Virus record (IMG/VR): IMGVR_UViG_3300030202_003189
Span: 1 to 64,000 of that record
Length of the DNA: 64,000 nucleotides
Reading direction: 5' to 3' (one strand)
How positions within the stretch are numbered: position 1 is the first letter of the stretch; the number at the start of each line of letters is the position of its first letter. The notes under the pieces were generated by a model, which searched no databases, was not told the origin of the DNA, and saw only the letters and a program-made list of their open reading frames with translations. A program made the translations under genes and the position numbers. Below, piece after piece: positions 254 to 37,899 of the stretch.

Positions 254-318
254 TAAAATTACCCCTCTTTTTAACACTAAAATCTTTGTTCCGATGTTTA
301 CAAACATGATTGATTTGT

Positions 319-326
319 TATATTTG
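319..326 (+). promoter_or_regulatory. Bacteroidota-type -7 promoter element (TATATTTG)
   Basis: Matches TAnnTTTG about 50 nt upstream of ORF 378; -33 element imperfect. Confidence 0.5.
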
Positions 327-358
327 TGACTAAAATAACGAACCAGAAGAATATTTTC

Positions 359-367
359 TGTGGATAA
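359..367. promoter_or_regulatory. DnaA-box consensus TGTGGATAA
   Basis: Exact match 10 nt upstream of the ORF 378 start. Confidence 0.35.
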
Positions 368-377
368 AATGTAACCT

Positions 378-1379: not shown

Positions 1380-1392
1380 AAAAGTAAAGAAA

Positions 1393-1674
1393 ATGAAAGA
1401 ACAAAGCGATTATCAAGAAAACAAAACAGTTGAAGAAGCAACTGAAGAGTTAAGACAAGAAGTGCCAGAAGTAATTACAAGAAAGATAAATGTATCTGGA
1501 TTAGAAGATGTGAGTCATTTAGTTAAAGAAATGGAAAAGATAGATGAAGACCAACAAAACAATAAAGATAAGATGTATGCTCTAGATGTATCTTACAATG
1601 GGAAACCTTCAAACCCATACTTTACATTATGTAAGTTTATTGAAGAACTTAATAACAAATTAGAAAAACAATAG
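1393..1674 (+). CDS. Hypothetical acidic protein
   Basis: 93-aa ORF in a tightly packed + strand operon. Confidence 0.75.
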   Translation: MKEQSDYQENKTVEEATEELRQEVPEVITRKINVSGLEDVSHLVKEMEKIDEDQQNNKDKMYALDVSYNGKPSNPYFTLCKFIEELNNKLEKQ

Positions 1675-1676
1675 AT

Positions 1677-1856
1677 ATGTCAGTAGAAATTAGAATTATG
1701 GAAAATGGACCAATTTTGGTTAAAGGAGAAACCATCGTAACAAAAGATGGAGAAAAAATAAAAGTAGGAGAAAGTTACGCATTGTGTAGGTGTGGTGAAA
1801 CTAAGAAACAACCAATGTGCGACGGAGCCCATAAATCTTGTGGTTTTAAGGGATAG
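1677..1856 (+). CDS. CDGSH iron-sulfur domain protein (59 aa, not in ORF track)
   Basis: Translated by hand: MSVEIRIMENGPILVKG...YALCRCGETKKQPMCDGAHKSCGFKG; C-x-C-x7-C-D-G-x-H is the CDGSH 2Fe-2S motif. Confidence 0.9.
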   Translation: MSVEIRIMENGPILVKGETIVTKDGEKIKVGESYALCRCGETKKQPMCDGAHKSCGFKG

Positions 1857-1865
1857 AACAGAACT

Positions 1866-2336
1866 ATGATAGAATCAAATAGAAAAGTAGTAGGATTTAC
1901 AGCAGGGAACTTTGATCTTTTACATCCAGGTTACATTTATACATTTGAAAAGGCTAAAGAACATTGTGATTACTTTATTGTTTTTTTACAAAGAGATCCA
2001 TCATCAACTCGTAATACTAAATATAAACCGGTAATACCTTTATATGAAAGATATAAAACTTTAATGGCGATAAAATATGTCGATGAGGTTCAGACTTACC
2101 AAACAGAAGAAGAACTAGAGGGATTAATCAACTTCTACCAACCTGACATTAGAATCTTAGGAGATGATTATATTGGTAAACCTTTTACGGGTGACCATTT
2201 ACCCCCTAAGGTAGTTTATACTACTAGAGCACATAACTGGTCTACAACAAGGATAAAGAACTTAATAACAGTTCAAACTTTGAGACAGAATCCAGAGATA
2301 ATAAAAGAAGTTAAAGAATTAAAAGATGAAGATTAA
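1866..2336 (+). CDS. Cytidylyltransferase (TagD/glycerol-3-phosphate cytidylyltransferase-like)
   Basis: GFTAGNFDLLHPGY HIGH-like motif, ER...AIKYVDEV, ILGDDY and STTRIK motifs. Confidence 0.85.
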   Translation: MIESNRKVVGFTAGNFDLLHPGYIYTFEKAKEHCDYFIVFLQRDPSSTRNTKYKPVIPLYERYKTLMAIKYVDEVQTYQTEEELEGLINFYQPDIRILGDDYIGKPFTGDHLPPKVVYTTRAHNWSTTRIKNLITVQTLRQNPEIIKEVKELKDED

Positions 2337-2565
2337 CACAAAATATAAAATAGGTGACGAGGTTTACGTTTTTAATGAGAATAAATTACAAAAAACAGAG
2401 ATTAGAGGAATTTATGCAAACGTATTTACGATTTATCCTACAACAGAACCACAAATGAAAACAGAAATCAACTATGATCTAAAACTTATAGAGGGGTCAG
2501 TTGAGGAAGATTTAGTTTATAATAGCGTTCAAGAAGCTAAGGATAATGTAGTGGTAGAAGGATAA
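2326..2565 (+). CDS. Hypothetical protein (KYKIGDEVY, SH3-like start)
   Basis: 79-aa ORF overlapping the upstream stop. Confidence 0.75.
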   Translation: MKINTKYKIGDEVYVFNENKLQKTEIRGIYANVFTIYPTTEPQMKTEINYDLKLIEGSVEEDLVYNSVQEAKDNVVVEG

Positions 2566-2810
2566 TGACACCTAAAGAATTTGTTTTATGGTTAAAGGGG
2601 GTTGATGTTGGTTTATCGGGACACCCTTATGAAGGAACATGGAATCTTATCCAAGAAAAATTAAATGAAGTTAAAATGGAGGATAGTCCCTCAAGAATTA
2701 TTCCAAGTAGAGATATTCCAATGCCAGATTCACCTAGTATCTTCCCTTCTCCCTGCGTCCCAACTAAAATACCACCAAGTCCAGGAAGTCCACCCGAAAT
2801 AATTTGTTAG
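2565..2810 (+). CDS. Hypothetical protein with Pro-rich C-terminus
   Basis: 81-aa ORF, translationally coupled to the previous gene. Confidence 0.75.
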   Translation: MTPKEFVLWLKGVDVGLSGHPYEGTWNLIQEKLNEVKMEDSPSRIIPSRDIPMPDSPSIFPSPCVPTKIPPSPGSPPEIIC

Positions 2811-2834
2811 ATTAAAATATTTTTATTATCTTTG
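2803..2834 (+). promoter_or_regulatory. Bacteroidota sigma-70 promoter TTTG-N20-TATCTTTG
   Basis: TTTG 2803-2806, 20-nt spacer, TATCTTTG 2827-2834, then TAGT and ATG 2839. Confidence 0.8.
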
Positions 2835-2838
2835 TAGT

Positions 2839-3441
2839 ATGGAAAATATAATAAAACAAATACAAGAGGCTTTAGATAATAATCTTCCAAAGGAAATTCC
2901 TTTTGAAAGCGGTTTAATGCAACGAGGAATTGCCGATATCATAGAAGTTATAGTTAGTGATATAATCCTAAACCTTAAACACCAATCAATTAAAGAGTCA
3001 TACGAAGCTAAAAGTAAGAGATCAATAGAAGATGTTGGTCTCGTTACAACAGAATACGATGATATTAAAATCGATATAAAAACTCACGACTCTGATTCAG
3101 ACTTGTCAATGCCTAACCTTATTTCAATATCTAGAATAAAAAAATTCTATGAAAACGATAGAAATTTACTACTATATGTTTTTGTGAAGTATGTTACTAA
3201 TGGGAGATCAATACAAATCCTTGATACAAAAGTTAAGGCAATCGAACAACTTAACTGGGAATGTCTAACAATAGGTAACTTAGGTAAGGGACAACTCCAA
3301 GTTAAAAATATGGATGAAATAACATTCCAGACATTTATGACAAGAAATGATTGGATAGAAAGATTATCCTGTGATGTAGTAATCTATTACCAGTCACTTA
3401 TAAAGAAGATACAAACAAAATGGATTAAAGAATGGTTATAG
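2839..3441 (+). CDS. PD-(D/E)XK restriction-endonuclease-like protein
   Basis: IEDVGLVTTEYDDIKIDIKT fits a D-x(n)-D-x-K active site; 200 aa. Confidence 0.6.
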   Translation: MENIIKQIQEALDNNLPKEIPFESGLMQRGIADIIEVIVSDIILNLKHQSIKESYEAKSKRSIEDVGLVTTEYDDIKIDIKTHDSDSDLSMPNLISISRIKKFYENDRNLLLYVFVKYVTNGRSIQILDTKVKAIEQLNWECLTIGNLGKGQLQVKNMDEITFQTFMTRNDWIERLSCDVVIYYQSLIKKIQTKWIKEWL

Positions 3442-3719
3442 GTAAAGTAGATTATTATGCTAGGGTAGGTATTTTAAGAAGAGACCATCTAATTGATGAA
3501 GGATTTCCTAACATTAGTTATCAGGAAAAAAATATGAGAATGGAAAGGATGAACAATATGGACTTCCATCAAAACTTCTCTGATGTATTAATTAGAAGAA
3601 TGTTGCACGAAAAAAAGATACCAAACTTTAATATTGGTGGAAAATTAGTATATATAAGTGATCCAAAGACAATAAAAGAATTAGAAGAAAAAATAAAAGA
3701 AAATGGAAGACATAAATAA
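3432..3719 (+). CDS. Hypothetical protein
   Basis: 95-aa ORF, overlapping neighbours in operon fashion. Confidence 0.7.
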   Translation: MVIGKVDYYARVGILRRDHLIDEGFPNISYQEKNMRMERMNNMDFHQNFSDVLIRRMLHEKKIPNFNIGGKLVYISDPKTIKELEEKIKENGRHK

Positions 3720-4014
3720 AAAAACAAAAGAGGAAATATGGCACGAGAATGAAGCCAGAAAATTTCTAGGAGATGTGGAGGAAGAAGGGAAAATATATCC
3801 TGAACAAACTGACCCAGCAACATTAAAGTCTAAATATTCTGCCAAAAATCCTTATGGAGAAGAGATGTTTAATAAAGAAGATTTCTTAGTGAAAGACCCA
3901 ACAAAAGAGGTACCACAGGAGGAATACATAAAAATAAAGAAATCCTGGTTAGAAGGGTTAAGAGATTTTGATACTTGGACAAAGTGGAAAAACGGTTTAA
4001 TAGAATATAAATAA
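3703..4014 (+). CDS. Hypothetical protein
   Basis: 103-aa ORF, coupled to the downstream gene. Confidence 0.75.
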   Translation: MEDINKKTKEEIWHENEARKFLGDVEEEGKIYPEQTDPATLKSKYSAKNPYGEEMFNKEDFLVKDPTKEVPQEEYIKIKKSWLEGLRDFDTWTKWKNGLIEYK

Positions 4015-4595
4015 TGGAGTTAGTAATAAAAAGTGATTGGTTATATGTAATGGACAATGTTCTCACATCTGAAGAATGTAAAGAATTAATAGAAATTGCA
4101 GAACCAACCTTAGAAGACTCTACTACTGTAGGGACAGTAATAAAGGGTTATAGAACCAGTTCAAATACCTACATTTCTAAAGAAATAGATAACAAAGTAA
4201 TCCAAGCCACGAACTTAATTACCCAAGTACTAACTGAGTTACCGACTGAAAATCAAGAAGATATGTGTATTGTAAAGTATCGAGAAGGAGAAGAATATAA
4301 AAAACATCGTGATTATATGGTTGATAACCAAACAGAGGAAGGCAAGGCAGAAATGGCTAGAGGAGGAGATAGAGCGTTTACTGTAATGTTTTATCTTAAT
4401 GACGATTTTGAAGAAGGTGGTACATTATTTGTAACACCTAATATAGAAGTAAAACCTAAGACAGGTCGATGTGTAATATGGAAAAACTATATTGATGGTA
4501 AACCTAACACCAAATCTATGCACGCGGGGTTACCAATTAAAAAAGGTATAAAATATATAGGAGTAAAATGGGTGAGACAAAATAAATTTATTTAA
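4014..4595 (+). CDS. 2OG-Fe(II) oxygenase, prolyl 4-hydroxylase-like
   Basis: RTSSNT, YKKHRD (HxD), FYLND..EGGT, SMHAG (distal His), GIKY (2OG-binding Lys typical of P4H). Confidence 0.88.
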   Translation: MELVIKSDWLYVMDNVLTSEECKELIEIAEPTLEDSTTVGTVIKGYRTSSNTYISKEIDNKVIQATNLITQVLTELPTENQEDMCIVKYREGEEYKKHRDYMVDNQTEEGKAEMARGGDRAFTVMFYLNDDFEEGGTLFVTPNIEVKPKTGRCVIWKNYIDGKPNTKSMHAGLPIKKGIKYIGVKWVRQNKFI

Positions 4596-4596
4596 G

Positions 4597-4770
4597 ATGA
4601 AAAAAATAATAACGAATATCTGGGCATGGTTTACGGCAATATTTTTAATAATAGATTTTCTTCTTATTGCTTTTTTATTTACTATAATTTTAGTAGTTTT
4701 GTTATCACCATTAGTAATATTAATTGGTGTACCTATGTTAATTAATGTTATCTGGAAAAAAAAGTATTAA
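4597..4770 (+). CDS. Small membrane protein (57 aa, not in ORF track)
   Basis: MKKIITNIWAWFTAIFLIIDFLL...VIWKKKY; long hydrophobic stretch. Confidence 0.6.
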   Translation: MKKIITNIWAWFTAIFLIIDFLLIAFLFTIILVVLLSPLVILIGVPMLINVIWKKKY

Positions 4771-4793
4771 ACTAAATAAAAATAATAGATAAG

Positions 4794-4991
4794 ATGGGAC
4801 ATTGGGAAGATTTGTGGTATGAGATACATGATTCAATAGAACGTGAAGGACTTACAAAAGAGTTCGAAGAACAATTAAAAAAGATGACAAACCAAGATAA
4901 ACATAAACACCTAGACACTAGAGATAAATGGTCCTATGCTTGTACAAAAGTAATTAACAACAAAAGAAAAGAAGTTAATAAAGATGAATAA
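4794..4991 (+). CDS. Hypothetical protein
   Basis: 65-aa ORF in operon. Confidence 0.75.
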   Translation: MGHWEDLWYEIHDSIEREGLTKEFEEQLKKMTNQDKHKHLDTRDKWSYACTKVINNKRKEVNKDE

Positions 4992-5367
4992 AAGTAATCA
5001 TAATAGACGTAGAGCGTTAGAGAGTAAGTTGATTAAGAAATCAGATACCTATCCAGGTTACTATAAATACATGATAACTATTGGGGAAAAAGATGGAACA
5101 ACTCATACACGACCATGTTATGGTAAGGATATGCAGGATGCTTTAAGTAGACTTATAAATAAAGAAAGAACTGTTAGGGTTGAAAAGAAAGTAATGAACA
5201 ATCCCTTTCTATTTTTCTTAGGTTGGTTATTAATGATGGGTTGGCCACTTATGTTGGGGTTTGAAACCTCAGCAACACCATGGTTTATAGTTTATGGTTT
5301 TATAGGTATAATAGGTTTAGTAATGATAGGAACCTGGTGGAACAGCTATATAAATAGAGGAGAGTAA
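4984..5367 (+). CDS. Hypothetical membrane protein (two C-terminal TM helices)
   Basis: 127 aa, hydrophobic C-terminal half. Confidence 0.75.
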   Translation: MNKSNHNRRRALESKLIKKSDTYPGYYKYMITIGEKDGTTHTRPCYGKDMQDALSRLINKERTVRVEKKVMNNPFLFFLGWLLMMGWPLMLGFETSATPWFIVYGFIGIIGLVMIGTWWNSYINRGE

Positions 5368-5423
5368 AATATCAATAATTCTCAGAAGGAGTTATTGTGT
5401 AAACAAACGATAAAATAAAACAA

Positions 5424-6086
5424 ATGAACAACGAATTTAACAAATATGCAATAGGACACGCGGGGATATCCTCATCAGTTCTAAATGATTACCAAAATAG
5501 TGCAACCCCTTACATACTAGAAGAGAGACAATTAAGAGTCACACAGATGGACATATTCTCAAGACTAATGATGGATAGGATTATCTGGATACCTGGACCA
5601 ATTACTGAAGTAACAGGGGTAATCGTACAGGCTCAACTAATGTTTCTAGACACCGCAGATAAGAAAGACATTACTTTACATATAGATTCACCAGGTGGGT
5701 CAGTAAAGGCAGGTTTAGGTATTGTGGATGTTATGGAGTATATTAAATGTGATGTAGCAACTGTAAATACAGGAATGGCTGCCTCGATGGGGTCAGTTTT
5801 ATTGGCTGCAGGTACTAAAGGTAAAAGATCCTCTTTAAGATTCAGTAGAACAATGTTACACCAATCCAGTGGAGGGGCAGTTGGTAATATACAAGACGCA
5901 AGGATTACAATGGACGAATGGGAAAAGACAAATAAGTTATTGTTTGAACTCCTTGGTAGGTATTGTAAGAAAACAGCGAAAAGAGTAGAGAAAGATGCGG
6001 CAAGAGACTTATGGTTAAGTGCTGAAGAATCTTTAGACTACGGAATAATAGATGAAGTAATAAAAAGTAAAAAAACAAAAAAATGA
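5424..6086 (+). CDS. clpP: ATP-dependent Clp protease proteolytic subunit
   Basis: DIFSRLMMDRII, IDSPGGSV, AASMGS (Ser), MLHQ (His), RDLWLS (Asp). Confidence 0.97.
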   Translation: MNNEFNKYAIGHAGISSSVLNDYQNSATPYILEERQLRVTQMDIFSRLMMDRIIWIPGPITEVTGVIVQAQLMFLDTADKKDITLHIDSPGGSVKAGLGIVDVMEYIKCDVATVNTGMAASMGSVLLAAGTKGKRSSLRFSRTMLHQSSGGAVGNIQDARITMDEWEKTNKLLFELLGRYCKKTAKRVEKDAARDLWLSAEESLDYGIIDEVIKSKKTKK

Positions 6087-6568
6087 AAGGAAAAATCGTA
6101 ACCGAACAAGGAACTATGGTGGTAGAGTTCTATGAAAAAGACGCACCGAATACAGTAAATAACTTTGTTAAATTAGCAAAGATGGGATTCTATGAAGGAC
6201 TTAAATTTCATAGAGTTATACCAGGATTCGTGGCACAAGGAGGTTGTCCACAGGGAACTGGAGTGGGTGGACCAGGATATAGTATTCTTTGTGAGATTAG
6301 TGGCGAGAACCAACATCACGACAAAGGAGTACTATCAATGGCACATGCAGGTAGAAATACAGGAGGGTCACAATTCTTTTTAGTGCATAGTAGACACACT
6401 ACTAAACATTTAGACGGTAATCATACATGTTTTGGTAAGGTCGTAGAAGGATTAGATATTATAGATAAGGTTAGACAAGATGACACGTTTAGTATAGTTA
6501 TCGAAGGAGGAGAACAAGACCCAGAAAACATCATTGTAGAGACTCAATTGAAAACAGGGACATTTTAA
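6083..6568 (+). CDS. Cyclophilin-type peptidyl-prolyl cis-trans isomerase
   Basis: APNTVNNF, FHRVIPGFVAQGG, LSMAHAGRNTGGSQFF, HLDGNHTCFGKV. Confidence 0.96.
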   Translation: MKGKIVTEQGTMVVEFYEKDAPNTVNNFVKLAKMGFYEGLKFHRVIPGFVAQGGCPQGTGVGGPGYSILCEISGENQHHDKGVLSMAHAGRNTGGSQFFLVHSRHTTKHLDGNHTCFGKVVEGLDIIDKVRQDDTFSIVIEGGEQDPENIIVETQLKTGTF

Positions 6569-6600
6569 TTTGGTAGTTAAACAATAAAGTATTATATTTG
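6569..6600 (+). promoter_or_regulatory. Bacteroidota sigma-70 promoter TTTG-N20-TATATTTG
   Basis: TTTG 6569-6572, 20-nt spacer, TATATTTG 6593-6600, then TAGT and ATG 6605. Confidence 0.8.
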
Positions 6601-6604
6601 TAGT

Positions 6605-6805
6605 ATGAAAGATTATACATGTGATAAATGTAAAGTGGAGATGTCTATATTTGAAGTAGGATATCTTGGTTCTCCACTCGGTAAGAAAGATAGAAAGGAA
6701 TGTAATCCTTTAATGAGTCTAGATTGTTTATGTCATGAATGTTATACGAAAAGGTTAGACAAACTTGGGAAAAACCCCAACAATATGAATTATGAAAAAA
6801 ACTAA
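6605..6805 (+). CDS. Small zinc-finger protein
   Basis: CDKC...CHEC pairs in 66 aa. Confidence 0.7.
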   Translation: MKDYTCDKCKVEMSIFEVGYLGSPLGKKDRKECNPLMSLDCLCHECYTKRLDKLGKNPNNMNYEKN

Positions 6806-7490
6806 AATTATTAATTTTTTCGGAGGACCTGGAATAGGAAAATCAACCCAAGCCGCAGGACTTTATTCATTAATGAAAAAGAATAGTATGAGCGTGGAAC
6901 TAACCTATGAGTTTCCAAAGATATTGGCTTGGGACGAGAATCATTCTGCAATTAAAGACCAACTTTATATAACCGCTAATCAACATCGTAATATCTCTCG
7001 ACTATATGGGAAAGTAGAATACATTATAGTAGATAGTCCCATTTTGTTTGGGATGGTTTATAAAGACAAATACGGAGCTGAGTACCCACAAGGTTTATAC
7101 GGAGATACCTTTGATACCTTTTTATTAGATTTGTTTCAACAATACGAAAACATCAACATACTATTAAGAAGACGAGAAGAAGATTATGATGAGATTGGAA
7201 GATTCCAAGATCTAAAAGAGTCTAGAGAGATTGATGGTATGTTAAGATCATTATTAGAAGATAATGAACTATCCTATCATGAGTTTGAAGTTAATAAGAA
7301 CAGTGCAACAACAATATATAAAACACTATTTGAGGATATGGAAGAAACAAAATGGGATGGCGGAACAATTGTAAGAATAAACCAATGTAAAGAATGTGGA
7401 AACCACGAAGGAATACAAATACCAAGTCATCCTGGTCTTGCGGAGTGTAGAGTGTGTCAACATCTGTGTGATGTAAAAGAAGAAAAGTAA
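6792..7490 (+). CDS. P-loop NTPase/kinase (AAA_28/NadR-like) with C-terminal Zn ribbon
   Basis: INFFGGPGIGKST Walker A, IIVDSP Walker B, terminal CKEC...CRVC. Confidence 0.8.
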   Translation: MKKTKIINFFGGPGIGKSTQAAGLYSLMKKNSMSVELTYEFPKILAWDENHSAIKDQLYITANQHRNISRLYGKVEYIIVDSPILFGMVYKDKYGAEYPQGLYGDTFDTFLLDLFQQYENINILLRRREEDYDEIGRFQDLKESREIDGMLRSLLEDNELSYHEFEVNKNSATTIYKTLFEDMEETKWDGGTIVRINQCKECGNHEGIQIPSHPGLAECRVCQHLCDVKEEK

Positions 7491-7514
7491 TTAATTAAAT
7501 AAATAATAAATAAA

Positions 7515-7694
7515 ATGGGAGTAAAAAAGAGAAAATTAGGGTCAAAGAATCCAAAGTACTTTGTTCCAACAAAGGACGATTCACCAGTAGTTAAAGAAAA
7601 AAAGTTAATGTGTAATGTTCCTGTTAGAGACACCAACGGTAATATAATTGAAGGTACTACTATACCGGTATATGGAGTTTGGTATGAGGACTAA
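7515..7694 (+). CDS. Hypothetical protein (59 aa, not in ORF track)
   Basis: MGVKKRKLGSKNPKYF...VYGVWYED fills the gap in the operon. Confidence 0.6.
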   Translation: MGVKKRKLGSKNPKYFVPTKDDSPVVKEKKLMCNVPVRDTNGNIIEGTTIPVYGVWYED

Positions 7695-7884
7695 AGAGTT
7701 ATTAAATAATAAGTGGATTAAATTATTATTCAGCGTTTCAATCATGTTGTCAGCGGTTCCATCTATCTATCAGGATTTTACATATGGACATAGTGGTGAA
7801 TGGACCCATTACGGTATGATGTTAGTCGGTGTTTTATATTTTATAGAGTCACTCTTGTGGACATTAGACATATGGAAGAAATAA
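7684..7884 (+). CDS. Small two-TM membrane protein
   Basis: ATG at 7684 preferred over the track start; two hydrophobic helices. Confidence 0.7.
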   Translation: MRTKELLNNKWIKLLFSVSIMLSAVPSIYQDFTYGHSGEWTHYGMMLVGVLYFIESLLWTLDIWKK

Positions 7885-8351
7885 TAAAAAAAGAACTATG
7901 GGATCATTACTCAGAACTCCCAAACCCATCATGGTATGAATATAAAGAAAATATGAAAAGCTTAGAACAACAATTAAAACAATTTGAGGAGGATATCTTT
8001 GCGGGTAAGGATATAGACATAACAGAATTTTATGTATTAAAAAAAGCATTACTAGATATTACACTGAGTGGTCATGTTGTGGAGGATTATAGTGACCTCT
8101 TAGAACTTCATGGGATATTAGAGAATATGTTAGATAGACGTCATAACGAACTTATGAATAAGAGATTAAATCTCTTAACCATTTGGTCTACGATATTTCT
8201 ACCTCTTTCATTCTATACTGGATTATGGGGAATGAATTTTGATGATGTTCCTTTAATCACAGATGATAATGGATTTTGGGTGTTCATGGGATTGACGATA
8301 ATAACTATTGGAGGTATGTGGATGTACTTCAAAAATAATAAATGGATATAA
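7872..8351 (+). CDS. corA: Truncated CorA-family Mg2+ transporter (stalk plus two TM helices)
   Basis: NKRLNLLTIWSTIFLPLSFYTGLWGMNFDDVP is the CorA TM1/GMN signature; only about 160 aa. Confidence 0.85.
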   Translation: MEEIIKKELWDHYSELPNPSWYEYKENMKSLEQQLKQFEEDIFAGKDIDITEFYVLKKALLDITLSGHVVEDYSDLLELHGILENMLDRRHNELMNKRLNLLTIWSTIFLPLSFYTGLWGMNFDDVPLITDDNGFWVFMGLTIITIGGMWMYFKNNKWI

Positions 8352-8352
8352 A

Positions 8353-8469
8353 ATGAAAGAAATAATAATAATGGTCCCACTACTTATAGTGGTAGGTGGT
8401 TTAGGTGTGGCAATAGGTATGTATATCTCTAGTCAAATAGAAAACCACATAGATAGGAACAGTAAATAA
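8353..8469 (+). CDS. Small single-pass membrane peptide (38 aa)
   Basis: MKEIIIMVPLLIVVGGLGVAIGMY...; translated by hand. Confidence 0.55.
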   Translation: MKEIIIMVPLLIVVGGLGVAIGMYISSQIENHIDRNSK

Positions 8470-8573
8470 TGAAGAACAAAAGACAATACAAAGATAGTGC
8501 AACATTTGTCTTTATAGGATATGTGGGTATAATCCTCGTAGTCTTAACAATGATTTTAGGTGTATGGGAATAA
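8469..8573 (+). CDS. Small single-pass membrane peptide (34 aa)
   Basis: MKNKRQYKDSATFVFIGYVGIILVVLTMILGVWE; coupled to the previous stop. Confidence 0.55.
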   Translation: MKNKRQYKDSATFVFIGYVGIILVVLTMILGVWE

Positions 8574-8680
8574 CTCACGTAATAGAAATAATAATGGGAA
8601 TAGGTTGGGCTGTTGGATGTTTAGTCGTCGCAACATACTCAATTACTCAGTATATAATAGAAAAAAATAAAAAATTATAA
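8564..8680 (+). CDS. Small single-pass membrane peptide (38 aa)
   Basis: MGITHVIEIIMGIGWAVGCLVVATYSI...; overlaps the previous gene. Confidence 0.5.
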   Translation: MGITHVIEIIMGIGWAVGCLVVATYSITQYIIEKNKKL

Positions 8681-8684
8681 AAAA

Positions 8685-8966
8685 ATGGAATTAATAGTAG
8701 GAATAGTAATAGGAATAATCATCGGAATAGGGCTCACTTCAGCACCACCATGGAAGTGGCAGAAAAGAAAGTGTAACACAGATTTGAAACCTGTAGATGA
8801 AAGAATGGAGAAGGTTTCTTCTAAGAAGACTCGAGCTACTCACAATAAAATAGCTGATGAGGTAACACACACAGACAAACCAAAGAAGAAAAGAAAACCA
8901 AGAAAGAATACCGGTAAAAGAAAGTATTATAGAAACAAAAAGAAAAAAGTTACCAAGACGGATTAA
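8685..8966 (+). CDS. Membrane-anchored protein with very basic C-terminus
   Basis: N-terminal TM helix, K/R-rich tail. Confidence 0.75.
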   Translation: MELIVGIVIGIIIGIGLTSAPPWKWQKRKCNTDLKPVDERMEKVSSKKTRATHNKIADEVTHTDKPKKKRKPRKNTGKRKYYRNKKKKVTKTD

Positions 8967-8992
8967 AGAAGAATCCAAAATAATTATAGTAT

Positions 8993-9193
8993 ATGGAACA
9001 TACACTTCAGGAAAGAATGAGTATCATGTTAGAAAGAATGGATAGGCACTATGGTCCCCATAGGATAAGAAGAATGTCCAAGGAAGAGATTAATAAGATG
9101 TCTCTTCTTTTTGGTGTTACCAGAGAAGAAAGAGAAGAATCTTATCAGATCCTAGAAACCATTGTGCCGACTATACCAAATAAACAACAATAA
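8993..9193 (+). CDS. Hypothetical protein
   Basis: 66-aa ORF in operon. Confidence 0.7.
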   Translation: MEHTLQERMSIMLERMDRHYGPHRIRRMSKEEINKMSLLFGVTREEREESYQILETIVPTIPNKQQ

Positions 9194-9199
9194 AAGATA

Positions 9200-9292
9200 A
9201 TGTCAGGGGCTAAAAAGAAAAAGAAAATAAAAATCGCTACTCATAAACGTAAAAAACGTTCAAGAAAAGATAGACATAAAACTAAACGATGA
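9200..9292 (+). CDS. Ribosomal protein bS22-like peptide (30 aa, not in ORF track)
   Basis: MSGAKKKKKIKIATHKRKKRSRKDRHKTKR; ungapped match to the Bacteroidota bS22 (AURKAIP1/COX24 family) pattern as recalled, including ATHKRKKR and RHK. Confidence 0.75.
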   Translation: MSGAKKKKKIKIATHKRKKRSRKDRHKTKR

Positions 9293-9465
9293 GACAAAGA
9301 AACTTAACTAAAGAGGAGAGAATCAAGAAATTAAAAGATAGAAGAGAATTTTTAATCACTGAATTATATGCCGCCCATAGACTGGATGGTTGGCACTTAA
9401 AAGGACTTAGCCAAGAATTAAAGAAAATACGAGAGAAGTTAGTTGATCTGGATATTACATCATAG
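9289..9465 (+). CDS. Hypothetical helical protein (58 aa, not in ORF track)
   Basis: MRQRNLTKEERIKKL...VDLDITS; ATGA overlap with the bS22-like ORF. Confidence 0.65.
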   Translation: MRQRNLTKEERIKKLKDRREFLITELYAAHRLDGWHLKGLSQELKKIREKLVDLDITS

Positions 9466-9468
9466 ATA

Positions 9469-11475
9469 CTATTGGAAGTTACAACAGAAACCACTCCAAC
9501 TAGATGAACAACAAGCTTTCCACTTAATTACCCAATTATCTTCACTGTGTGATGCTTTCCAACTACAACAACCCCCATTACCTCCTTTACAACACCAACT
9601 TTGTTTTCCTGATGGTATTAATGGTCTAGATGGAACTGGTTTACTCGACTTAGCTATACCATATATTTCGTCAAATTCTTTATGAGTTTCATCTACAGTG
9701 TACTCTCTCCCATCTCCTTTTGTTACCATAAACACAGGTGAACCTTCGTCTTCTCCTACTAATTCTTCCATGTCCATATCGTAATCCTCTTCTTCCTCTT
9801 TAAGGAAAGATTGATAACTTTCAGCCACTGAATTATTAGGCATTGGTTGATCTGGCGAAGCAGGACAAGGTTTTACTTGCATATCTGGTCCAACACAAAC
9901 TGTTTGTTCATACACCTGTCCATTAAGACATTCAAGTACGGCGTTAAAGTAATAGGTAGTCTTATAATAAGGTGAAGCTGGATTAGACTCAATATATAAT
10001 CCTAATAAACCTACCGATCTAGTGTAATTTGGACAGGTTCCTATACTTGTCATCTTGTGTACCCCATCCTTATAGAACTTTATGGTACCTTGTCCACATA
10101 ATTGAGCCTCCATACTAACTGAGTTTGCATCAAATTGTGTTATACTTAAAGTGAATGAACAAGATTCCTCACCACACATTAGAGAGCTATCACCACCACC
10201 ACACTCTTCATACTTTTCCAGTTTCTCACTAGATTCTGCAGATGGGTCGATATCATTAACTTCTCCATCACTCATTTCTATATCTACTTGATCTGACTTA
10301 ATATCAATTCTTCCTCCAGACTTTAATTGAGATTCCATACTACTACCTTTGTCTAATTCTCGTTCTTTTATTAACTTTCGTACGAGATTGGTAATATCCG
10401 ATTCTTTTATTCTTATTTTCTCTACTTCTTCTTCCCTATCTCTTACATCTGTAAACGGTTCTTTTTCTTTACTTAAAGAAGAGTTATTTGACATACTCAT
10501 ATCCCTATCTTTCATCATTTCTTTATCCAGTGGTAATTTACCAGGACAATCACTGTCTAGACACATCTGCTTTGTAGGATAACAAGTGGTACCATCCCAT
10601 AGTTGATATTCTCTACATCTAACACATCTTGGATTTCCAAACTTATCTGGCATCCCACATGTCCATTTATTTGATTCTGCACATTGGTCCTGACAATCTT
10701 GTGTTGTAGTATAAGGACAATGACCAGCATCTACTACAGTCTGAGAACATGGAGTAGTACAGTCATGACATCTATAAAACTCTTGTGGGTTTCCAACACC
10801 ACAGGTATTATTACAATCAGTATAAGCGTTTGCTCCTGAAAACTGTCCACTACCATCACCAGGATCTATACAACTACCATTAACACAATCATAAGTTGGT
10901 GCCATAACTCCCAGTTGACACATTTGACAATCTCCGTATGGTCCCTGTATGTTTGTTATTGAGTCTGTACCCATCATCATCATGTGCTGTCCTGTCGAAG
11001 GAACACTTACGGGACCAACATACTCTAAACAGTAATCCTGTGGATTTGGTCCTTGAGAACCACTAGTGTATTTTAATGTAGTGCCCGGTGATGGAGAACC
11101 CATCCCTAGCCAAAAGGCCTCACTATTTTGATGAGTTGCATAATTTTGTAGACTTCCATTATTAGGATTTTGTGATGCGCTATTATATGGAGATGGTGCT
11201 CCCATATACCATCCATAACTACTAACTGGACTTGAACCATTCGCCCCTGCGACGCCCTGACCGTATTGAGCAATTGCAGCATCTATACTAAAACGGTCCC
11301 AGTATCTAATACCACTTCCTAAAAATACAGCATTAGAACAATCGAACCATTCATGATACGTGTTATTATTACTTCCTATTTGTTCTGATAATGTATTCTT
11401 GGAGTTTAATGGTTTAAGACCCATTAATGTTCTACCTCTATTTAGTTCTTCTGTGAGTTTTTTCGGTGTTTTCAT
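9469..11475 (-). CDS. Cys-rich modular protein with LxE leader motifs (putative virion cargo polyprotein)
   Basis: N-terminal LTEELNRGRTLMGL and LSEQ, internal KIRIKESDITNLVRKLIKE, several Cys-rich modules, TATTTATA upstream. Confidence 0.85.
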   Translation of the reverse strand: MKTPKKLTEELNRGRTLMGLKPLNSKNTLSEQIGSNNNTYHEWFDCSNAVFLGSGIRYWDRFSIDAAIAQYGQGVAGANGSSPVSSYGWYMGAPSPYNSASQNPNNGSLQNYATHQNSEAFWLGMGSPSPGTTLKYTSGSQGPNPQDYCLEYVGPVSVPSTGQHMMMMGTDSITNIQGPYGDCQMCQLGVMAPTYDCVNGSCIDPGDGSGQFSGANAYTDCNNTCGVGNPQEFYRCHDCTTPCSQTVVDAGHCPYTTTQDCQDQCAESNKWTCGMPDKFGNPRCVRCREYQLWDGTTCYPTKQMCLDSDCPGKLPLDKEMMKDRDMSMSNNSSLSKEKEPFTDVRDREEEVEKIRIKESDITNLVRKLIKERELDKGSSMESQLKSGGRIDIKSDQVDIEMSDGEVNDIDPSAESSEKLEKYEECGGGDSSLMCGEESCSFTLSITQFDANSVSMEAQLCGQGTIKFYKDGVHKMTSIGTCPNYTRSVGLLGLYIESNPASPYYKTTYYFNAVLECLNGQVYEQTVCVGPDMQVKPCPASPDQPMPNNSVAESYQSFLKEEEEDYDMDMEELVGEDEGSPVFMVTKGDGREYTVDETHKEFDEIYGIAKSSKPVPSRPLIPSGKQSWCCKGGNGGCCSWKASHSEDNWVIKWKACCSSSWSGFCCNFQ

Positions 11476-11552
11476 GTTTTTATTTAAGTTTGTTTTTGTA
11501 TAGTTTATTGTACATTACATATAAATACCCACGAAATAGAATAAAGTAATCA

Positions 11553-12575
11553 TTAAAATAATTCTTTAATTCTACTTATTTCATCATCTTCTGGATTTAT
11601 TTTTTTGGCACCAATGTTAGGGTTAGTTGGTTCTGATGGTCCACGATATTCCTTATCAATTTCTAGGGTTCCAGTATTTGAACAAGAGATTTCACTAAAA
11701 CCAGAAGAGTGGTCACCACCTATACATACAGTATGTGAATCTATTCCTTGGGTATACTCACATTCAATTTTAGCAGTATAGTTTCCAGATATTGTGGGAG
11801 GTACGACATATTCAGTCCCATAATTATTAAAATTTGATGCATTAAAACCTCCAGGTCCGCTAATAGTTAAATCCATACTTCCTGAGAAACCTGAATTACA
11901 ACCTTTTAATTTTAATGTTTGAGTTGATGAATCAAAAACAAAGTATTCCATAACACACTCCGCATCTGTTGGAGGAGGATTAAGATTTTGTATACCAGGT
12001 TGACTAAGACCTGATTGATTTAATGGTTTTATAATATTAAGTCCTGGGATGTTTGTAGTACATGTTGTATTAGGAGGTGGCGGAGGTGGATTAATTTGAG
12101 AACAATTATCTTGACAATATTCCATAGAACCAAATTCGTTCCCAGTTGCAAAAAACGAAGTTCCCTCATGTGAAAGTCCTACTTGTGTACAATTAGGATT
12201 TCCTTGTAAGTCGTGTCCACATACAAATTTAGAACTACATAAATTACCTCCAGGATGTGGATTCAATGAAATACCACCACTACCACTAATAGGAGTAACA
12301 TTTTTAACATACCAAGCAAGGTTACGATATTTGATATACATACCCACTTGAGGTGTTTGTCCACCGATATCACTAACAGCAGACCATGTAAGTGTTTTAT
12401 TCTGATAATCAGGCCAAGGGTCTCCATTTGGATCACAAGCCCCATATGTTCCACCAATTGGCCAGGTATTACTACAACTCCAGTCACCATAACCATTACA
12501 CCAGTCAGCACTTATTTTATAAGAAGTGGTCTGTTCATTTAATAGTTTATTGTATTTGTCTAATGATTCCCTCAT
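11553..12575 (-). CDS. Cys-rich modular protein with LLNEQ leader and EISRIKELF tail
   Basis: True start likely MRESLDKYNKLLNEQ at 12575, just downstream of TATTTATA; shares two modules with 9469-11475. Confidence 0.85.
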   Translation of the reverse strand: MRESLDKYNKLLNEQTTSYKISADWCNGYGDWSCSNTWPIGGTYGACDPNGDPWPDYQNKTLTWSAVSDIGGQTPQVGMYIKYRNLAWYVKNVTPISGSGGISLNPHPGGNLCSSKFVCGHDLQGNPNCTQVGLSHEGTSFFATGNEFGSMEYCQDNCSQINPPPPPPNTTCTTNIPGLNIIKPLNQSGLSQPGIQNLNPPPTDAECVMEYFVFDSSTQTLKLKGCNSGFSGSMDLTISGPGGFNASNFNNYGTEYVVPPTISGNYTAKIECEYTQGIDSHTVCIGGDHSSGFSEISCSNTGTLEIDKEYRGPSEPTNPNIGAKKINPEDDEISRIKELF

Positions 12576-12580
12576 ATTAA

Positions 12581-12588
12581 TATAAATA
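12581..12588 (-). promoter_or_regulatory. Putative phage late promoter TATTTATA
   Basis: Sense-strand motif 5 nt upstream of the 12575 start. Confidence 0.6.
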
Positions 12589-12635
12589 CTCACTACAGAG
12601 ATTAAAGTGTAGGGGGCTGGGGGAAAGATACCGAA

Positions 12636-12715
12636 GGTTCGAGGTACACAAGAGATAAGTAAAAAACAAGAAAGGAGGGATGGGAGGATAGTACCTTCTG
12701 GTTCGAGGTGCACAA
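12636..12715 (+). repeat. Two 16-bp direct repeats GGTTCGAGGTRCACAA
   Basis: Copies at 12636-12651 and 12700-12715, one mismatch, in a divergent intergenic region. Confidence 0.6.
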
Positions 12716-12937
12716 TAGATAACTTTAAGTTCTAAGTCTTATAACTCCTCTCCCATTATTCCCCCTCACTTCGTTCAGGTAATGGTCGTGTACTTATAAG
12801 ACTTAGTCCTCCTTAGTGAATGTTAGAGTGAAACAACAGAGGATTGTGTTAATGCATTCAAAGGTCTTAAAGAAACTAGATTAGTTTAGACCTTTACATA
12901 AGGAATAACGTGCATATTTATAATAAAAACAGTTATT

Positions 12938-13168
12938 ATGAATGAAAAAGAAAAAGCAATGAGATATAACACTCTAATGAGTGAGTATATACGTTTAGAG
13001 AACATGATGAAACAAGTTCCTCAGTTATCACTAGACGAACAAATGAAAAACATAGATGCAACCCATAAGGTATTATATACACCAGAAAATGAAGCTCTAG
13101 TTAATCAGTATAAATCAAGAATGTATGCGATACAACATGAGGCGCAAACAAAACAACTAATCAGATGA
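12938..13168 (+). CDS. Hypothetical protein
   Basis: 76 aa, preceded by TATTTATA at 12915. Confidence 0.8.
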   Translation: MNEKEKAMRYNTLMSEYIRLENMMKQVPQLSLDEQMKNIDATHKVLYTPENEALVNQYKSRMYAIQHEAQTKQLIR

Positions 13169-14115
13169 AAACAAGACGTGTAAAGATTTCCCAATCCCAA
13201 CTAGCAAGACTAGTAGAAAATAAAGTAAATGAAAATACTGGTGGTGTAGGAAATCTATCCACTGACGACTCTCCTAATATAGGTATGGGTTCGTCTAAGT
13301 TAGTAACAAAGACTCATATGAACAAACCAGCAGGTAGGTTAAACATTATGGGTGGTACAAATCCACAACAGTTTAAGGAAGGAGGAAGAAAAGAACCTCA
13401 AGGTATGTCTTATAAAAAAGAAATGATGGGAGAAAATAAGTCTAGTGAAAGATTAGATGGTAACAATATAGTAGTAATATGGCCAAGTAGACAATCACAA
13501 CAAGAGATGTCAGGTAAGTTAGACCAAATGGGACTAGAGTTACCAGATGAATGGGAAGTAGGAATGGCTTGTCATTTATGTTGTTGTCCTCTTCATATGT
13601 CAATACAACCTTGTGACTATGGTAAACCTAATAGAAGAAGAGGAGACGGTATGTATGAAAACTCTCACACTATTCCACATAGTGACCAACAAGATTTCTT
13701 TAACGAAGAAGAGGAAGATGAGTATGTAGATACTAGAACACACTTACCTGATGATGGTGGACTCGGTGGTGGAGGAGGTGGAACTCCTTCAGTAGGAGGA
13801 ATACCAGGTTTACCAGTAGGACCTAAAGGTAAAGTAAGAAATAATCCATATAAACCAGGAAAATTAAAAGAAGAGATTACAGCAGGTGGACCTTGTATTT
13901 GTAGAAAGTGGGTGATGGGTTCTGATGGTATAAACAAATGTGTCAGTTATAGTCCTCCTGGATGTGCTGATGCCCCATTTAAGAAAGCCAATGATGATGA
14001 AGATACTGTAAATAAAAAGAAGATTAATCCTAGAGTAATAAGAAGACAAGATAGGGATAAAGCTAGAAGAAGACCTTACTCTTCTAAAGCAAGAGACATG
14101 AGAGGAAGTAGATAA
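13165..14115 (+). CDS. LxE-motif protein with two small Cys-rich modules
   Basis: RRVKISQSQLARLVE leader; CHLCCCP..C and CICRKW..KC..Y...C modules between LxE sites. Confidence 0.85.
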   Translation: MKTRRVKISQSQLARLVENKVNENTGGVGNLSTDDSPNIGMGSSKLVTKTHMNKPAGRLNIMGGTNPQQFKEGGRKEPQGMSYKKEMMGENKSSERLDGNNIVVIWPSRQSQQEMSGKLDQMGLELPDEWEVGMACHLCCCPLHMSIQPCDYGKPNRRRGDGMYENSHTIPHSDQQDFFNEEEEDEYVDTRTHLPDDGGLGGGGGGTPSVGGIPGLPVGPKGKVRNNPYKPGKLKEEITAGGPCICRKWVMGSDGINKCVSYSPPGCADAPFKKANDDEDTVNKKKINPRVIRRQDRDKARRRPYSSKARDMRGSR

Positions 14116-14127
14116 AAGAATACAACA

Positions 14128-14445
14128 ATGAAAAACTTAATAAGAATAATCAAAGAAGAACTCTCATTACTCCAAGAGAAAGAGAAGTGTTGTAGAAGAT
14201 ATGAATGGATGGGTGGTGAATGGAAATGTACTAAATATAGAAAATGTGCAGATGGTGAAAAACCTGTAGGACAATCACCTCAAGGTATACAAGAAGATAA
14301 AGAAAAAGAATGTTGTGTATGTTATGAAAAGAAACCTGTACTAGGTCATGTTCAAACAGGACCACACGATGGTGATGGATGGAAATGGAAGTGTTGTGGA
14401 TATAAACCATGTAGTGAACTAACTCAAGGTTTCACTCTAGGATAA
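14128..14445 (+). CDS. Small precursor with two Cys-rich peptide modules
   Basis: IIKEE/LLQE leader; CCRRYEW..WKC..Y.KC and CCVCY..WKWKCC.Y.PC separated by IQE. Confidence 0.85.
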   Translation: MKNLIRIIKEELSLLQEKEKCCRRYEWMGGEWKCTKYRKCADGEKPVGQSPQGIQEDKEKECCVCYEKKPVLGHVQTGPHDGDGWKWKCCGYKPCSELTQGFTLG

Positions 14446-14516
14446 ATGTAATGGGATTCCATTGAAGACTATACACTAAAACACCATTGAGGTTGTATAC
14501 ATTTAGACACGCAAAC

Positions 14517-15994: not shown

Positions 15995-15995
15995 G

Positions 15996-16070
15996 TCGGG
16001 GTGGCAGGATTCGAACCTGCGGCCTCCACGTCCCAAACGTGGCGCGATAACCGGGCTACGCTACACCCCG
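15996..16070 (-). tRNA. trnP: tRNA-Pro (UGG), CCA not encoded
   Basis: Minus strand CGGGGTG acceptor stem, CCACG-TTTGGGA-CGTGG anticodon arm, GCAGGTTCGAATCCTGC T-arm. Confidence 0.97.
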
Positions 16071-21961: not shown

Positions 21962-22354
21962 ATGAAAAAAATTAGACTTAGTGAATCAGACTTAACAAAC
22001 TTAATTGAAAGAGTCGTTAAAGAACAAGCTGCTCAAGTTGGTGGTTTTGGTTATGGGTTTGCTCCTGTAACAGAAGACACTGAAGGTGAAGAAACTTATA
22101 ACTATGGTGAATTAGAAGGAGCTGACCATAGAGAAGAAATGGGTTTAGAACATGAAATGGGTATGGCACCTGCTGATAGAATCGGTGAGATAGAAAAACA
22201 TTTAGACGCACTTAAAAAAGATATGTCTTATGATGAAAGTCATGAAGATAGAGGTGAAGCAAATACATCATTCGCAGAAAGTATGAGAAGAAAAGCTGCT
22301 AACTTAAGAGAGTCTAGAAGAAATCAAAACAGAAGAATCAGAAGAAGAAGATAA
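21962..22354 (+). CDS. LxE-leader acidic protein with Arg-rich tail
   Basis: MKKIRLSESDLTNLIERVVKEQ leader. Confidence 0.85.
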   Translation: MKKIRLSESDLTNLIERVVKEQAAQVGGFGYGFAPVTEDTEGEETYNYGELEGADHREEMGLEHEMGMAPADRIGEIEKHLDALKKDMSYDESHEDRGEANTSFAESMRRKAANLRESRRNQNRRIRRRR

Positions 22355-37897: not shown

Positions 37898-37899
37898 AG

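Follow-up and report, generated by a model that had tools for sequence, protein, structure and literature searches.

Cysteine-rich island proteins of a giant marine phage as candidate tag-addressed prohead cargo

Why would a phage keep, side by side, several genes for proteins crowded with cysteines? The question is raised by positions 9469-14445 of a 64,000-nucleotide stretch of DNA (the window), which is the first 64 kb of the 231,285-bp linear viral contig IMGVR_UViG_3300030202_003189 of IMG/VR, rated ~70% complete by CheckV. A first-pass annotation of this island had described precursor-like proteins, in which small disulfide-rich modules reminiscent of toxins or defensins are set behind leaders and between cleavage sites of a head protease. 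All the peptide strings that it quoted, from the open reading frames (ORFs) at 14128, 13165, 9469, 22356 and 23225, are present in the sequence, and the quoted ORFs contain 2.8-9.5% Cys, compared with a proteome mean of 1.5%. The answer proposed here, to which we give an even chance of being right, is that the island proteins are late prohead cargo, addressed by short tags and trimmed by a protease of the T4 gp21 type, and that they represent a lineage-specific elaboration of the internal-protein and Alt system of T4.

Judged by its genes, the phage is a giant, uncultured, marine myovirus, distantly of the T4 type. The sequencing runs that hold this sequence are marine metagenomes. The large terminase subunit TerL (60430-62199) is of the T4 type, and its best phage matches are those of Microcystis phage Mel-JY01 and Flavobacterium phage immuto, at ~31-33% identity. 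Family searches identify a Portal_T4 portal, a Gp23 capsid protein, a gp19-like tube and baseplate proteins and, at 67683-68372, a prohead protease of the T4 gp21 type (Peptidase_S77, Pfam 3.8e-25; phrog_207, 4.6e-45).

Tags, promoter motifs and putative cleavage sites

All 235 ORFs of the genome were read, and many of them were found to have short terminal sequences in common. Delimited by hidden Markov models (HMMs) from seed copies together with regular expressions, these sequences form four short helical families, named here tags A to D. Tag A (IKLxESDLTNLVxKIVxE) is mostly N-terminal, tag B (L-x-E-E-(L/V/F)-x-R-M-K-x-L-M-G-L) is N- or C-terminal, and tags C (NLIxxIKKELxLLxE) and D (xxYxxLLNE(Q/A)) are N-terminal. 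At least one tag is carried by 30 proteins, which reach ~1000 aa in length, at the N-end, the C-end or both, and all four Cys-rich proteins of the island are among them. The tags are conserved at the level of the peptide and not of the DNA, as identity is 0.46-0.49 at codon position 3 compared with 0.72-0.74 at position 2. Cys-rich proteins (at least 2.5% Cys, at least 100 aa) are much commoner among the tagged ones, with 12 of 30 against 10 of the 156 untagged (odds ratio 9.7, p = 8e-6). Tag A was not found in immuto or Mel-JY01, and tag B gave only two weak matches in immuto, which indicates that the expansion of the tag families is specific to this lineage.

The four Cys-rich ORFs of the island encode 668, 340, 316 and 105 aa with 36, 14, 9 and 10 Cys, respectively. 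On the minus strand, the 9469 protein (9469-11475) is a mosaic that begins with tag B (MKTPKKLTEELNRGRTLMGLKPLN, 11401-11475; HMM i-E 1.7e-6), which contains LTE and is followed by LSE at aa 29-31. It continues with a Cys-rich N-half, an internal tag A at the junction of the halves (EKIRIKESDITNLVRKLIKERE, 10351-10428; an HMM match) and a C-half, and closes with a CC-rich tail of 8 Cys in 42 aa (WCCKGGNGGCCSWK...KWKACCSSSWSGFCCNFQ, 9472-9597) that ends in ...WCCKGGNGGCCSWKASHSEDNWVIKWKACCSSSWSGFCCNFQ. The second minus-strand gene (11553-12575, 340 aa) carries tag D at the N-terminus of its product (MRESLDKYNKLLNE/QTT, the slash marking here and below a putative cut) and tag B at the C-terminus (DDEISRIKELF). 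On the plus strand, a gene for a conserved, Cys-free protein of 76 aa (12938-13168), with orthologues in the relatives L012 (261 kb) and L002, is the first of a unit that continues with the 13165 protein (13165-14115, 316 aa) and the 14128 protein (14128-14445, 105 aa). The former begins with tag A, a conserved region of ~135 aa and a semi-conserved Cys/His cluster, after which a hypervariable cassette region leads into a conserved basic tail; it reads ...GKLKEE-ITAGGP-CICRKWVMGSDGINKCVSYSPPGC, in which the hairpin-type module CICRKWVMGSDGINKCVSYSPPGC (aa 244-267, 13894-13965) is preceded by LKE at aa 234-236. The latter is composed of tag C (aa 1-17, ending in LQE), module 1 (aa 21-40), an IQE linker (aa 54-56) and module 2 (aa 62-95), and reads in turn MKNLIRIIKEELSLLQE, KEK-CCRRYEWMGGEWKCTKYRKC, ...GIQE and DKEKE-CCVCYEKK...WKWKCCGYKPC; its tag C is modelled as a helix over aa 9-18 by AlphaFold2.

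Chance frames or non-coding sequence were considered as an explanation of these ORFs and are ruled out by their homologues, their promoter motifs and their conservation at the peptide level, so that they are real genes. The 14128 protein has three homologues among 5.8 billion proteins, in which the Cys positions of the window copy are all kept; the 13165 protein has nine, and the 9469 protein has four close ones (an identical copy left out) and 62 more distant cluster representatives. Neither Pfam nor PHROGs assigned the four island proteins or their neighbours to a meaningful family, the 9469 protein having no Pfam family at E ≤ 0.1, and feature and structure look-ups in the ESM Atlas for the 14128 and 9469 proteins gave no usable lead. 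No match to the island was found by blastn and tblastn in 50,697 phage records, and no relative was confirmed in scans of IMG/VR for which the 13165 protein and the alignment of the 9469 family served as queries.

The motif GTATTTATA precedes each of the three transcription units of the island as well as the genes of TerL, portal, protease, scaffold, sheath, tube and baseplate. Between 9000 and 15500 there are exactly three copies of it, in the form (G/A)TATTTATA, and each of the three units has one shortly before it: as GTGGGTATTTATA at 11520-11527 (minus strand), upstream of the 9469 gene; at 12581-12588 (minus strand); and at 12915-12922 (plus strand), ahead of the 12938-13165-14128 string. 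Genome-wide, it lies within 120 nt upstream of 57 of the 235 genes, where ~8 matches are expected, and this placement before structural genes suggests that it behaves as a late promoter. Since the copy at 12581-12588 stands 13 nt before the ATG at 12575, the second minus-strand gene most likely starts there (340 aa) and not at the GTG at 12713. Across the genome, GTATTTATA(G/A)TAT often ends just 11-13 nt before an ATG (e.g., 60418, 42552 and 24395), which suggests that many late genes have very short leaders or none.

The tags also tie the island to head-assembly genes. Tag B forms the C-terminus of a 469-aa protein encoded directly upstream of the capsid gene, in the position of the scaffold; the N-terminal helix and the C-terminal part of this protein are conserved, and its middle is extremely acidic. 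Its homologues at the same position in immuto and Mel-JY01 end in ...VSRWQKLAGIIK (RWQKLAGIIK) and ...VERMKKLAGIVK (RMKKLAGIVK), respectively. Tag C is found in three proteins only, the 14128 protein and the products of two genes between protease and scaffold, one of which (70370) resembles T4 gp67 in consisting of the tag and an acidic tail. Between portal and protease lies a gene for a Cys-rich protein of 545 aa that has tag B at its C-terminus.

In T4, gp21 cleaves after L/I-x-E, and the capsid-targeting propeptides are 10-20 aa long (PMC9026906, PMC5694885). Here, L/I/V-x-E stands at the end of tags A, C and D and at the start of tag B. In the proteome, LNE is enriched 4.4-fold within the first 30 residues, where six of the seven occurrences of LLNE lie, and [LI]xEQ is observed 55 times against 24 expected. 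The capsid protein has YLINE/QTTS at aa 60, where T4 gp23 has its known maturation site SFLTE/AEIG at aa 65, and the segments downstream of the two align; YLINE/QTTS is therefore likely to be the maturation site of this capsid protein, as predicted from the alignment. The same kind of sequence, LLNE/QTT or LLTE/QS, closes the tags of the proteins 11553, 17503 and 69590 and of their orthologues in relatives. In the 14128 protein, the linker L/I-x-E before each Cys module is kept in all three homologues, and cuts at all of its L/I-x-E sites are predicted to give fragments of 39 aa (4 Cys) and 49 aa (6 Cys). The large Cys-rich bodies hold few or no such sites. The idea of precursors cut by the head protease is thus plausible by context, given the gp21-family protease, leaders that are tags ending in L/I/V-x-E and the conserved linker site, while its other element, the release of toxins, finds no support. 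As most of the Cys-rich material belongs to proteins of 300-1000 aa with few or no sites, the picture of mini-proteins is limited at most to the 14128 protein and the C-terminal part of the 13165 protein.

If these elements work together as in T4, each protein would carry one or two short amphipathic-helix tags (A-D) at its N-end, its C-end or a module junction, by which it would be recruited to the scaffolding core or the inner shell during head assembly. The gp21-type protease would then cut after the L/I/V-x-E that bounds the tags and after the same motif in exposed linkers, and removal of the tags would leave the Cys-rich bodies inside the head. From the 14128 protein, two peptides would result, one of 39 and one of 49 residues, both basic or neutral and with one Cys module each.

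Several of the tagged proteins end in strongly basic tails (21962-22354, 22356-23219, 23225-24145, 41157-41717 and 13165-14115), such as RRNQNRRIRRRR, RRNNNRRIRK and RRRPYSSKARDMRGSR, which are reminiscent, by analogy, of DNA-associated internal proteins. Among the ORFs quoted outside the island, 22356 carries RRLNE-APYCPGGCGECEC and 23225 carries GLLNE-APGFPGMCCDGGPDC. Inside ORF 22356-23219, a run of 10 N at 22729-22738 between two copies of MDNWWGNDWGKVADDGGG looks like an assembly gap within a tandem repeat of this tagged, Cys-containing protein.

Cassette exchange in the island

By comparison of related contigs, the island is a recombination-prone hot spot at which cassettes of late genes are swapped. 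The relative L012 is 88-92% identical to the window over the backbone 1-9464, and within the island it matches only at a series of short joints, 10354-10419, 11469-11547, 12574-13567, 14038-14112 and from 14470 onward, whereas 9465-10353, 11548-12573, 13568-14037 and 14113-14469 have no counterpart in it. The joint at 10354-10419 consists of 66 bp coding for the internal tag A of the 9469 protein and is 88% identical to the sequence coding for the C-terminal tag A of the L012 orthologue, with the flanks unmatched. The joint at 11469-11547 is intergenic, and the one at 14038-14112 (plus strand), which codes for the basic tail IRRQDRDKARRRPYSSKARDMRGSR of the 13165 protein, is 93% identical at the DNA level within an otherwise unmatched stretch. 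Overall, identity between relatives is 85-93% for tags, flanks and basic tail, and what differs is the Cys modules, which are exchanged for others, gained or lost. The hypervariability of the modules that the first-pass annotation had proposed to look for is therefore found, with the tags and the basic tail conserved around them.

The exchange affects whole genes as well as parts of them. The 11553 gene is a complete cassette that is missing in relatives, since 11548-12573 has no DNA match in L012 or L002 and its flanks do. L012 also lacks the 14128 gene, and in the marine runs X7 and X8 a contig of low depth joins 14112 to 14458 through 12 other letters (ATGAAAAGATAA), so that a three-codon mini-ORF stands in place of the 14128 gene (14113-14457). 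At the position of the island, one relative has genes for 227, 476, 563 and 404 aa and another for 588, 56, 245, 437 and 461 aa, nearly all of which carry tag C or D at the N-terminus and tag B at the C-terminus. Contigs from four other marine runs break up across the island, with replaced segments.

The 9469 protein is itself a fusion. Its N-half matches the homologues P0005 and P0006, which end with tag A, and the match of its C-half, P0007, belongs to another locus, the 202.9-kb island. Its CC-rich tail is without counterpart in all four aligned homologues, and a ~92% identical copy of it spans 9400-9723 in contigs of other marine runs. In the 13165 family (an alignment of 10 sequences), hardly any variation is seen in tag A and the first ~135 aa, and 7 of the 10 members have a clearly recognisable basic tail RRxDRDKARRRPYSSKARDMRGSR, P0078 having a similar basic segment internally. 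The middle region holds at least five unrelated Cys cassettes, three of which keep a CxC-(12-14)-C frame around loops that cannot be aligned, and at the position of CICRKWVMGSDGINKCVSYSPPGC the relatives have other cassettes of this CxC-(12-14)-C type.

A diversity-generating retroelement was considered as the source of this variation and is ruled out, as the 231 kb contain no match to the reverse transcriptase family RVT_1 and the variation consists of cassette replacement and indels; cassette exchange is thus the better description. Under the proposed mechanism, the bodies would be drawn from a common pool of small Cys-rich modules that are swapped between loci and between phages, with recombination at the conserved tag-coding and flanking sequences driving the exchange. 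T4 internal proteins, which are diverse and have only their targeting sequence conserved (PMC3012670), would have diversified likewise behind a constant capsid-targeting sequence.

Cysteine modules and competing explanations

The most conserved Cys-rich part of the 9469 protein, aa 172-345 (10441-10962, minus strand), contains a module of the type WDCxxGxC...GQYxSxxxCxxxC and a domain of the type YRCHDCxTPC...KWxCGxPDKFGNPRC...CLDSxC. An alignment of 14 sequences of this region has 16 invariant columns, of which 8 are Cys. By exhaustive HMMER searches, the WDCxxGxC...GQYxSxxxCxxxC module is found in the 62 other cluster representatives, among them proteins with a signal peptide and a C-terminus of the type IX secretion system (T9SS) and other tag-bearing phage proteins. 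The AlphaFold2 model of the 9469 domain reaches a pLDDT of 80-90 over aa 20-140 of the model. Compared with the PDB by Foldseek, every match has E > 1; among AFDB clusters, the best match is a protein with a T9SS sorting domain (7.9e-5), followed by a Kazal-like protein and then by many weak Kunitz proteins. In an exhaustive comparison with VIA-align, Kunitz/BPTI proteins account for 15 of the 17 chains with Z ≥ 2 (Z 2.0-3.3 over ~40 aa). On the model, then, the 9469 Cys domains look faintly Kunitz-like and not like a knottin or a defensin.

A second link to secreted proteins is given by the repeat GCTDPxAxNY. It occurs in a 1262-aa phage protein with 75 Cys (33021-36809), which has a signal peptide and a T9SS Por_Secre_tail sorting domain and suggests a Bacteroidota host, and also in the tag D/B proteins 17503, 203415 and 65442, which have no signal peptide. 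Identical types of module are thus found either under T9SS signals or under phage tags, which would act as two alternative address labels. The extended repeats of the 33021 protein (GCTDPxAxNY..DDGSC) are 38-55% identical to those of 17503, 203415 and the tail-region protein 172625 (G000 coordinates), and several ORFs downstream of it (36806-40291) have N-termini resembling signal peptides. The island proteins themselves have no signal peptide and no Por_Secre_tail domain by Pfam, and so do not have the features of T9SS cargo.

Several points weigh against the reading of the island proteins as prohead cargo. The modules that they have in common with T9SS-secreted and tail-region proteins suggest an extracellular or exposed location, and a tail tube would be an awkward exit route for large proteins with many disulfide bonds. 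The tags have no detectable homology to the T4 head-core proteins compared, gp67, gp68 and gp22; in a comparison of the tag HMMs with these three and gp21, gp23 and gp24, leaving the T4 internal-protein genes aside, the best i-E was 0.09. The scaffold-position protein has weak similarity to T4 gp22 and no match in Pfam or PHROGs, so that the name scaffold derives from its position and architecture. L/I-x-E is a short and common motif, and the Cys-rich bodies show no shortage of it relative to composition-preserving shuffles (12 occurrences, 13.5 expected), so that the scarcity of sites in the large bodies is explained by composition. When the capsid protein was modelled in complex with the C-terminal 70 aa of the scaffold-position protein, the verdict was 'no answer', which is evidence neither way, and every relative found is uncultured.

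The main rival to the prohead-cargo reading, improbable on the whole, is that the proteins are exposed parts of the virion, such as head decorations, head fibres or tail appendages comparable to Hoc of T4, in which the tags would be anchors on the outside and the modules disulfide-bonded adhesion domains facing the seawater. The recurrence of the 9469 Cys modules and of the GCTDPxAxNY repeats in Bacteroidota proteins with signal peptides and T9SS C-terminal domains, that is, in extracellular domains, is what such parts would lead one to expect, and the same repeats are found in proteins of the tail and baseplate gene region (167525-174217). Late-promoter motifs on the genes agree with it, and disulfide-rich domains would suit an oxidising sea. 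However, tag B is also carried by the scaffold-position protein, an internal component, and tag C by genes between protease and scaffold; protease-type sites flanking the tags would detach the anchor; and some 30 different decoration proteins would be unusual.

The modules that had been flagged in the plus-strand genes bear on the state of the cysteines. The first-pass annotation had assigned one shared Cys pattern to the 14128, 13165 and 9469 proteins. Across the 231 kb, a regular expression of this pattern matches at exactly three places, of which two lie in 14128 and the third in the adjacent gene 13165, against ~0.006 matches in composition-preserving shuffles, a figure that is only indicative because the pattern was defined after the data had been seen; the tail of the 9469 protein falls outside the expression and resembles it in KWKACC. 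The 14128 protein contains two copies of the unit (L/I)QE-(D)KEK(E)-CC-xx-YE...WKC-xx-Y-xK-(x)C. The beta-hairpin that had been suggested for the pattern appears for module 1 (CCRRYEWMGGEWKCTKYRKC, 14188-14247, plus strand; Cys positions conserved) in the AlphaFold2 model made from 4 sequences, with strands at 22-28 and 31-37, and with a pLDDT of only ~70. The model as a whole has a mean pLDDT of 56 and a disordered linker, and module 2 (CCVCYEKK...WKWKCCGYKPC, 6 Cys, 14311-14412, plus strand) is drawn as two short hairpins at low confidence. As the model is weak, its four Foldseek matches are meaningless, and the comparison with knottin and defensin folds that had been proposed yields no such match for the 9469 domain model, only the weak Kunitz/BPTI-like ones.

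The two full-length homologues have 6 Cys in module 1 and the window copy has 4, a difference of one pair that fits disulfides. The 6 Cys of module 2 are without exception shared by the window copy and these two homologues, and P0001, the third homologue, departs from them ahead of the second Cys cluster. CxxC (aa 62-65) and Cx4C (aa 90-95) stand in module 2 beside the hairpin turns predicted by the low-confidence model, an arrangement that would also fit a zinc ribbon; neither module 1 nor the 13165 module has a CxxC pair. It could accordingly be argued, as a second and quite unlikely alternative, that the modules are zinc knuckles or ribbons in unpackaged intracellular proteins, acting as regulators or as inhibitors of host defence or proteases, and that the tags serve some other interaction, for example with the Clp/DnaK machinery of the phage. 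Besides module 2, this would be consistent with the Cys/His cluster of the 13165 protein, with the absence of signal peptides from proteins made in a reducing cytoplasm, with the 231 kb available, in which no oxidase of the Erv1/ALR or DsbA type was found, and with phage-encoded ClpB/C-like and ClpP-like proteins. Of genes for oxidative folding, one thioredoxin was identified. The zinc reading is at odds with the late-promoter motif that these genes have in common with structural genes, with tags that recur on head-assembly genes, with the homology of the 9469 modules to domains of secreted proteins and with the one-pair difference in module 1, which disulfides predict.

In its strongest form, the toxin or defensin idea would make these proteins precursors of ribosomally synthesised and post-translationally modified peptides or of bacteriocins, the leader guiding an enzyme for modification or export and toxin-like peptides being set free outside the cell, as the layout of leader, core, site and core and the duplicated unit of the 14128 protein would allow, but this is very improbable, because the neighbouring ORFs searched, in a scan short of the entire genome, hold no modifying enzyme or transporter domain, the same leaders occur on proteins of up to ~1000 aa, at C-termini and on head-module genes, and no knottin or defensin fold was matched.

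Returning to prohead cargo, its activity is a matter of guesswork: after ejection, it may act on or in the envelope or the cytoplasm of the host, under diversifying pressure. A bolder version, which we consider a long shot, is a combinatorial, 'venom-like' system in which disulfide-rich mini-domains, with conserved Cys frameworks, hypervariable loops and in part a likeness to protease inhibitors, would be shuffled at interchangeable tags, loaded into the capsid, trimmed by the protease and delivered to the host envelope or cell, and in which a swap of the label would alternatively route the modules to the T9SS of the host.

Genome surroundings and known systems

Just downstream of the island lies a tRNA-Pro(TGG) gene (15995-16070, minus strand), the only feature returned by Rfam and sigma-70/terminator scans of 8-17.5 kb, in which sigma-70-like sites were rarer than in shuffles. 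Beside the island, the conserved backbone (1677-1856, 4014-4595, 6083-6568 and 6792-7490; Pfam on the L012 orthologues) encodes a CDGSH zinc-finger protein, a 2OG-Fe(II) oxygenase, a cyclophilin-type prolyl isomerase and an AAA_28 protein, the oxygenase and the isomerase lying near genes of Gly/Pro-rich proteins. The phage also encodes a set of chaperones and proteases, composed of a ClpB/ClpC-like double AAA+ protein, two ClpP-like proteins, both distinct from the gp21-type head protease, and DnaK-like and DnaJ-like genes (window 51507-53960, minus strand, and 5424-6086, plus strand; G000 227944-228543, 222889-224754 and 210797-211726); the DnaK-like and DnaJ-like labels come from reading the sequence and from Pfam on the orthologous contig. 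The Gp23-type capsid protein has 645 aa (G000 72360-74297; L003:12360-14297), and as related capsid proteins cover 54-59% of it, in two pieces, it carries a large insertion. Further along, a long block of minus-strand genes (G000 81000-99300) resembles, as judged from the sequences, sugar or glycan biosynthesis, with N-termini similar to glycosyltransferases, HisH/HisF and epimerases or dehydratases. A 1285-aa protein (42564-46421) ends in a C-terminal DUF192 domain (3.2e-24) and has a paralogous stretch in a 1375-aa protein (G000 216631-220758).

If the tags are loading signals, the capsid-targeting principle of T4 would be extended to several types of tag, at either end of the protein, one of them shared with the scaffold, and to dozens of cargo proteins, and short portable peptides would become available to load foreign proteins into the capsids of large marine phages. 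It would also mean that modular, disulfide-rich domains of the extracellular type can be taken up by phages as virion cargo and varied through cassette exchange, and would point to an undescribed arms race over the envelope of marine Bacteroidota cells. Whatever their function, the tag families and the L-x-E/Q site offer a practical predictor of head proteins in uncultured T4-like giant phages.

Several known systems resemble parts of this arrangement. Kunitz/BPTI domains are faintly comparable to aa 266-311 of the 9469 protein, modelled as a beta-hairpin with a C-terminal helix and 6 Cys, although the spacing C-x10-C-x2-C-x11-C-x7-C-x4-C is not canonical, Pfam gives no Kunitz match, and the flagged modules of the 14128 and 13165 proteins are not this domain. 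With the Cys-rich repeat proteins that Bacteroidota secrete through the T9SS, the WDCxxGxC...GQYxSxxxCxxxC module and the GCTDPxAxNY repeats are held in common, but the island proteins carry phage tags instead of a signal peptide and a T9SS C-terminal domain. The coat-binding helices at the C-termini of scaffold proteins and the cargo-loading peptides of encapsulins are, like the tags, short terminal helices proposed to dock a protein inside a shell of the HK97 fold and transferable to unrelated cargo; the likeness is one of analogy.

Closer parallels come from phage heads. The inner-head (ejection) proteins of phiKZ, 201phi2-1 and SPN3US also belong to giant phages in which many head proteins are cut after Glu at a minimal motif, as is predicted here, and they include paralogues with conserved N-termini and divergent bodies (PMC5694885). 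Their propeptides exceed 100 aa, their site is S/A/G-x-E and their lineage is another one, whereas the tags described here have 15-25 aa and end at the T4 motif L/I-x-E.

The closest comparison is with the internal proteins IPI, IPII and IPIII of T4 and with Alt, which enter the head by a capsid-targeting sequence and are processed by gp21. Both systems have a head module of the T4 family with a gp21-type protease, short terminal tags resembling propeptides and ending in L/I-x-E, diverse and fast-changing bodies behind the conserved tags, and genes that lie outside the head module in variable loci, and Alt sets a precedent for processing at the C-terminus (PMC5694885, PMC9026906, PMC3012670). 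The differences are equally clear. There is no sequence similarity to the T4 core proteins compared, and packaging is here a proposal. In place of one tag family there are four, whose members may also stand at the C-terminus, at the two ends of one protein or inside it, where modules join, and one of which is common with the C-terminus of the scaffold. The tagged proteins number ~30, several of them of 500-1000 aa, and where T4 has small, basic, globular inhibitors, this phage has modular bodies rich in cysteine.

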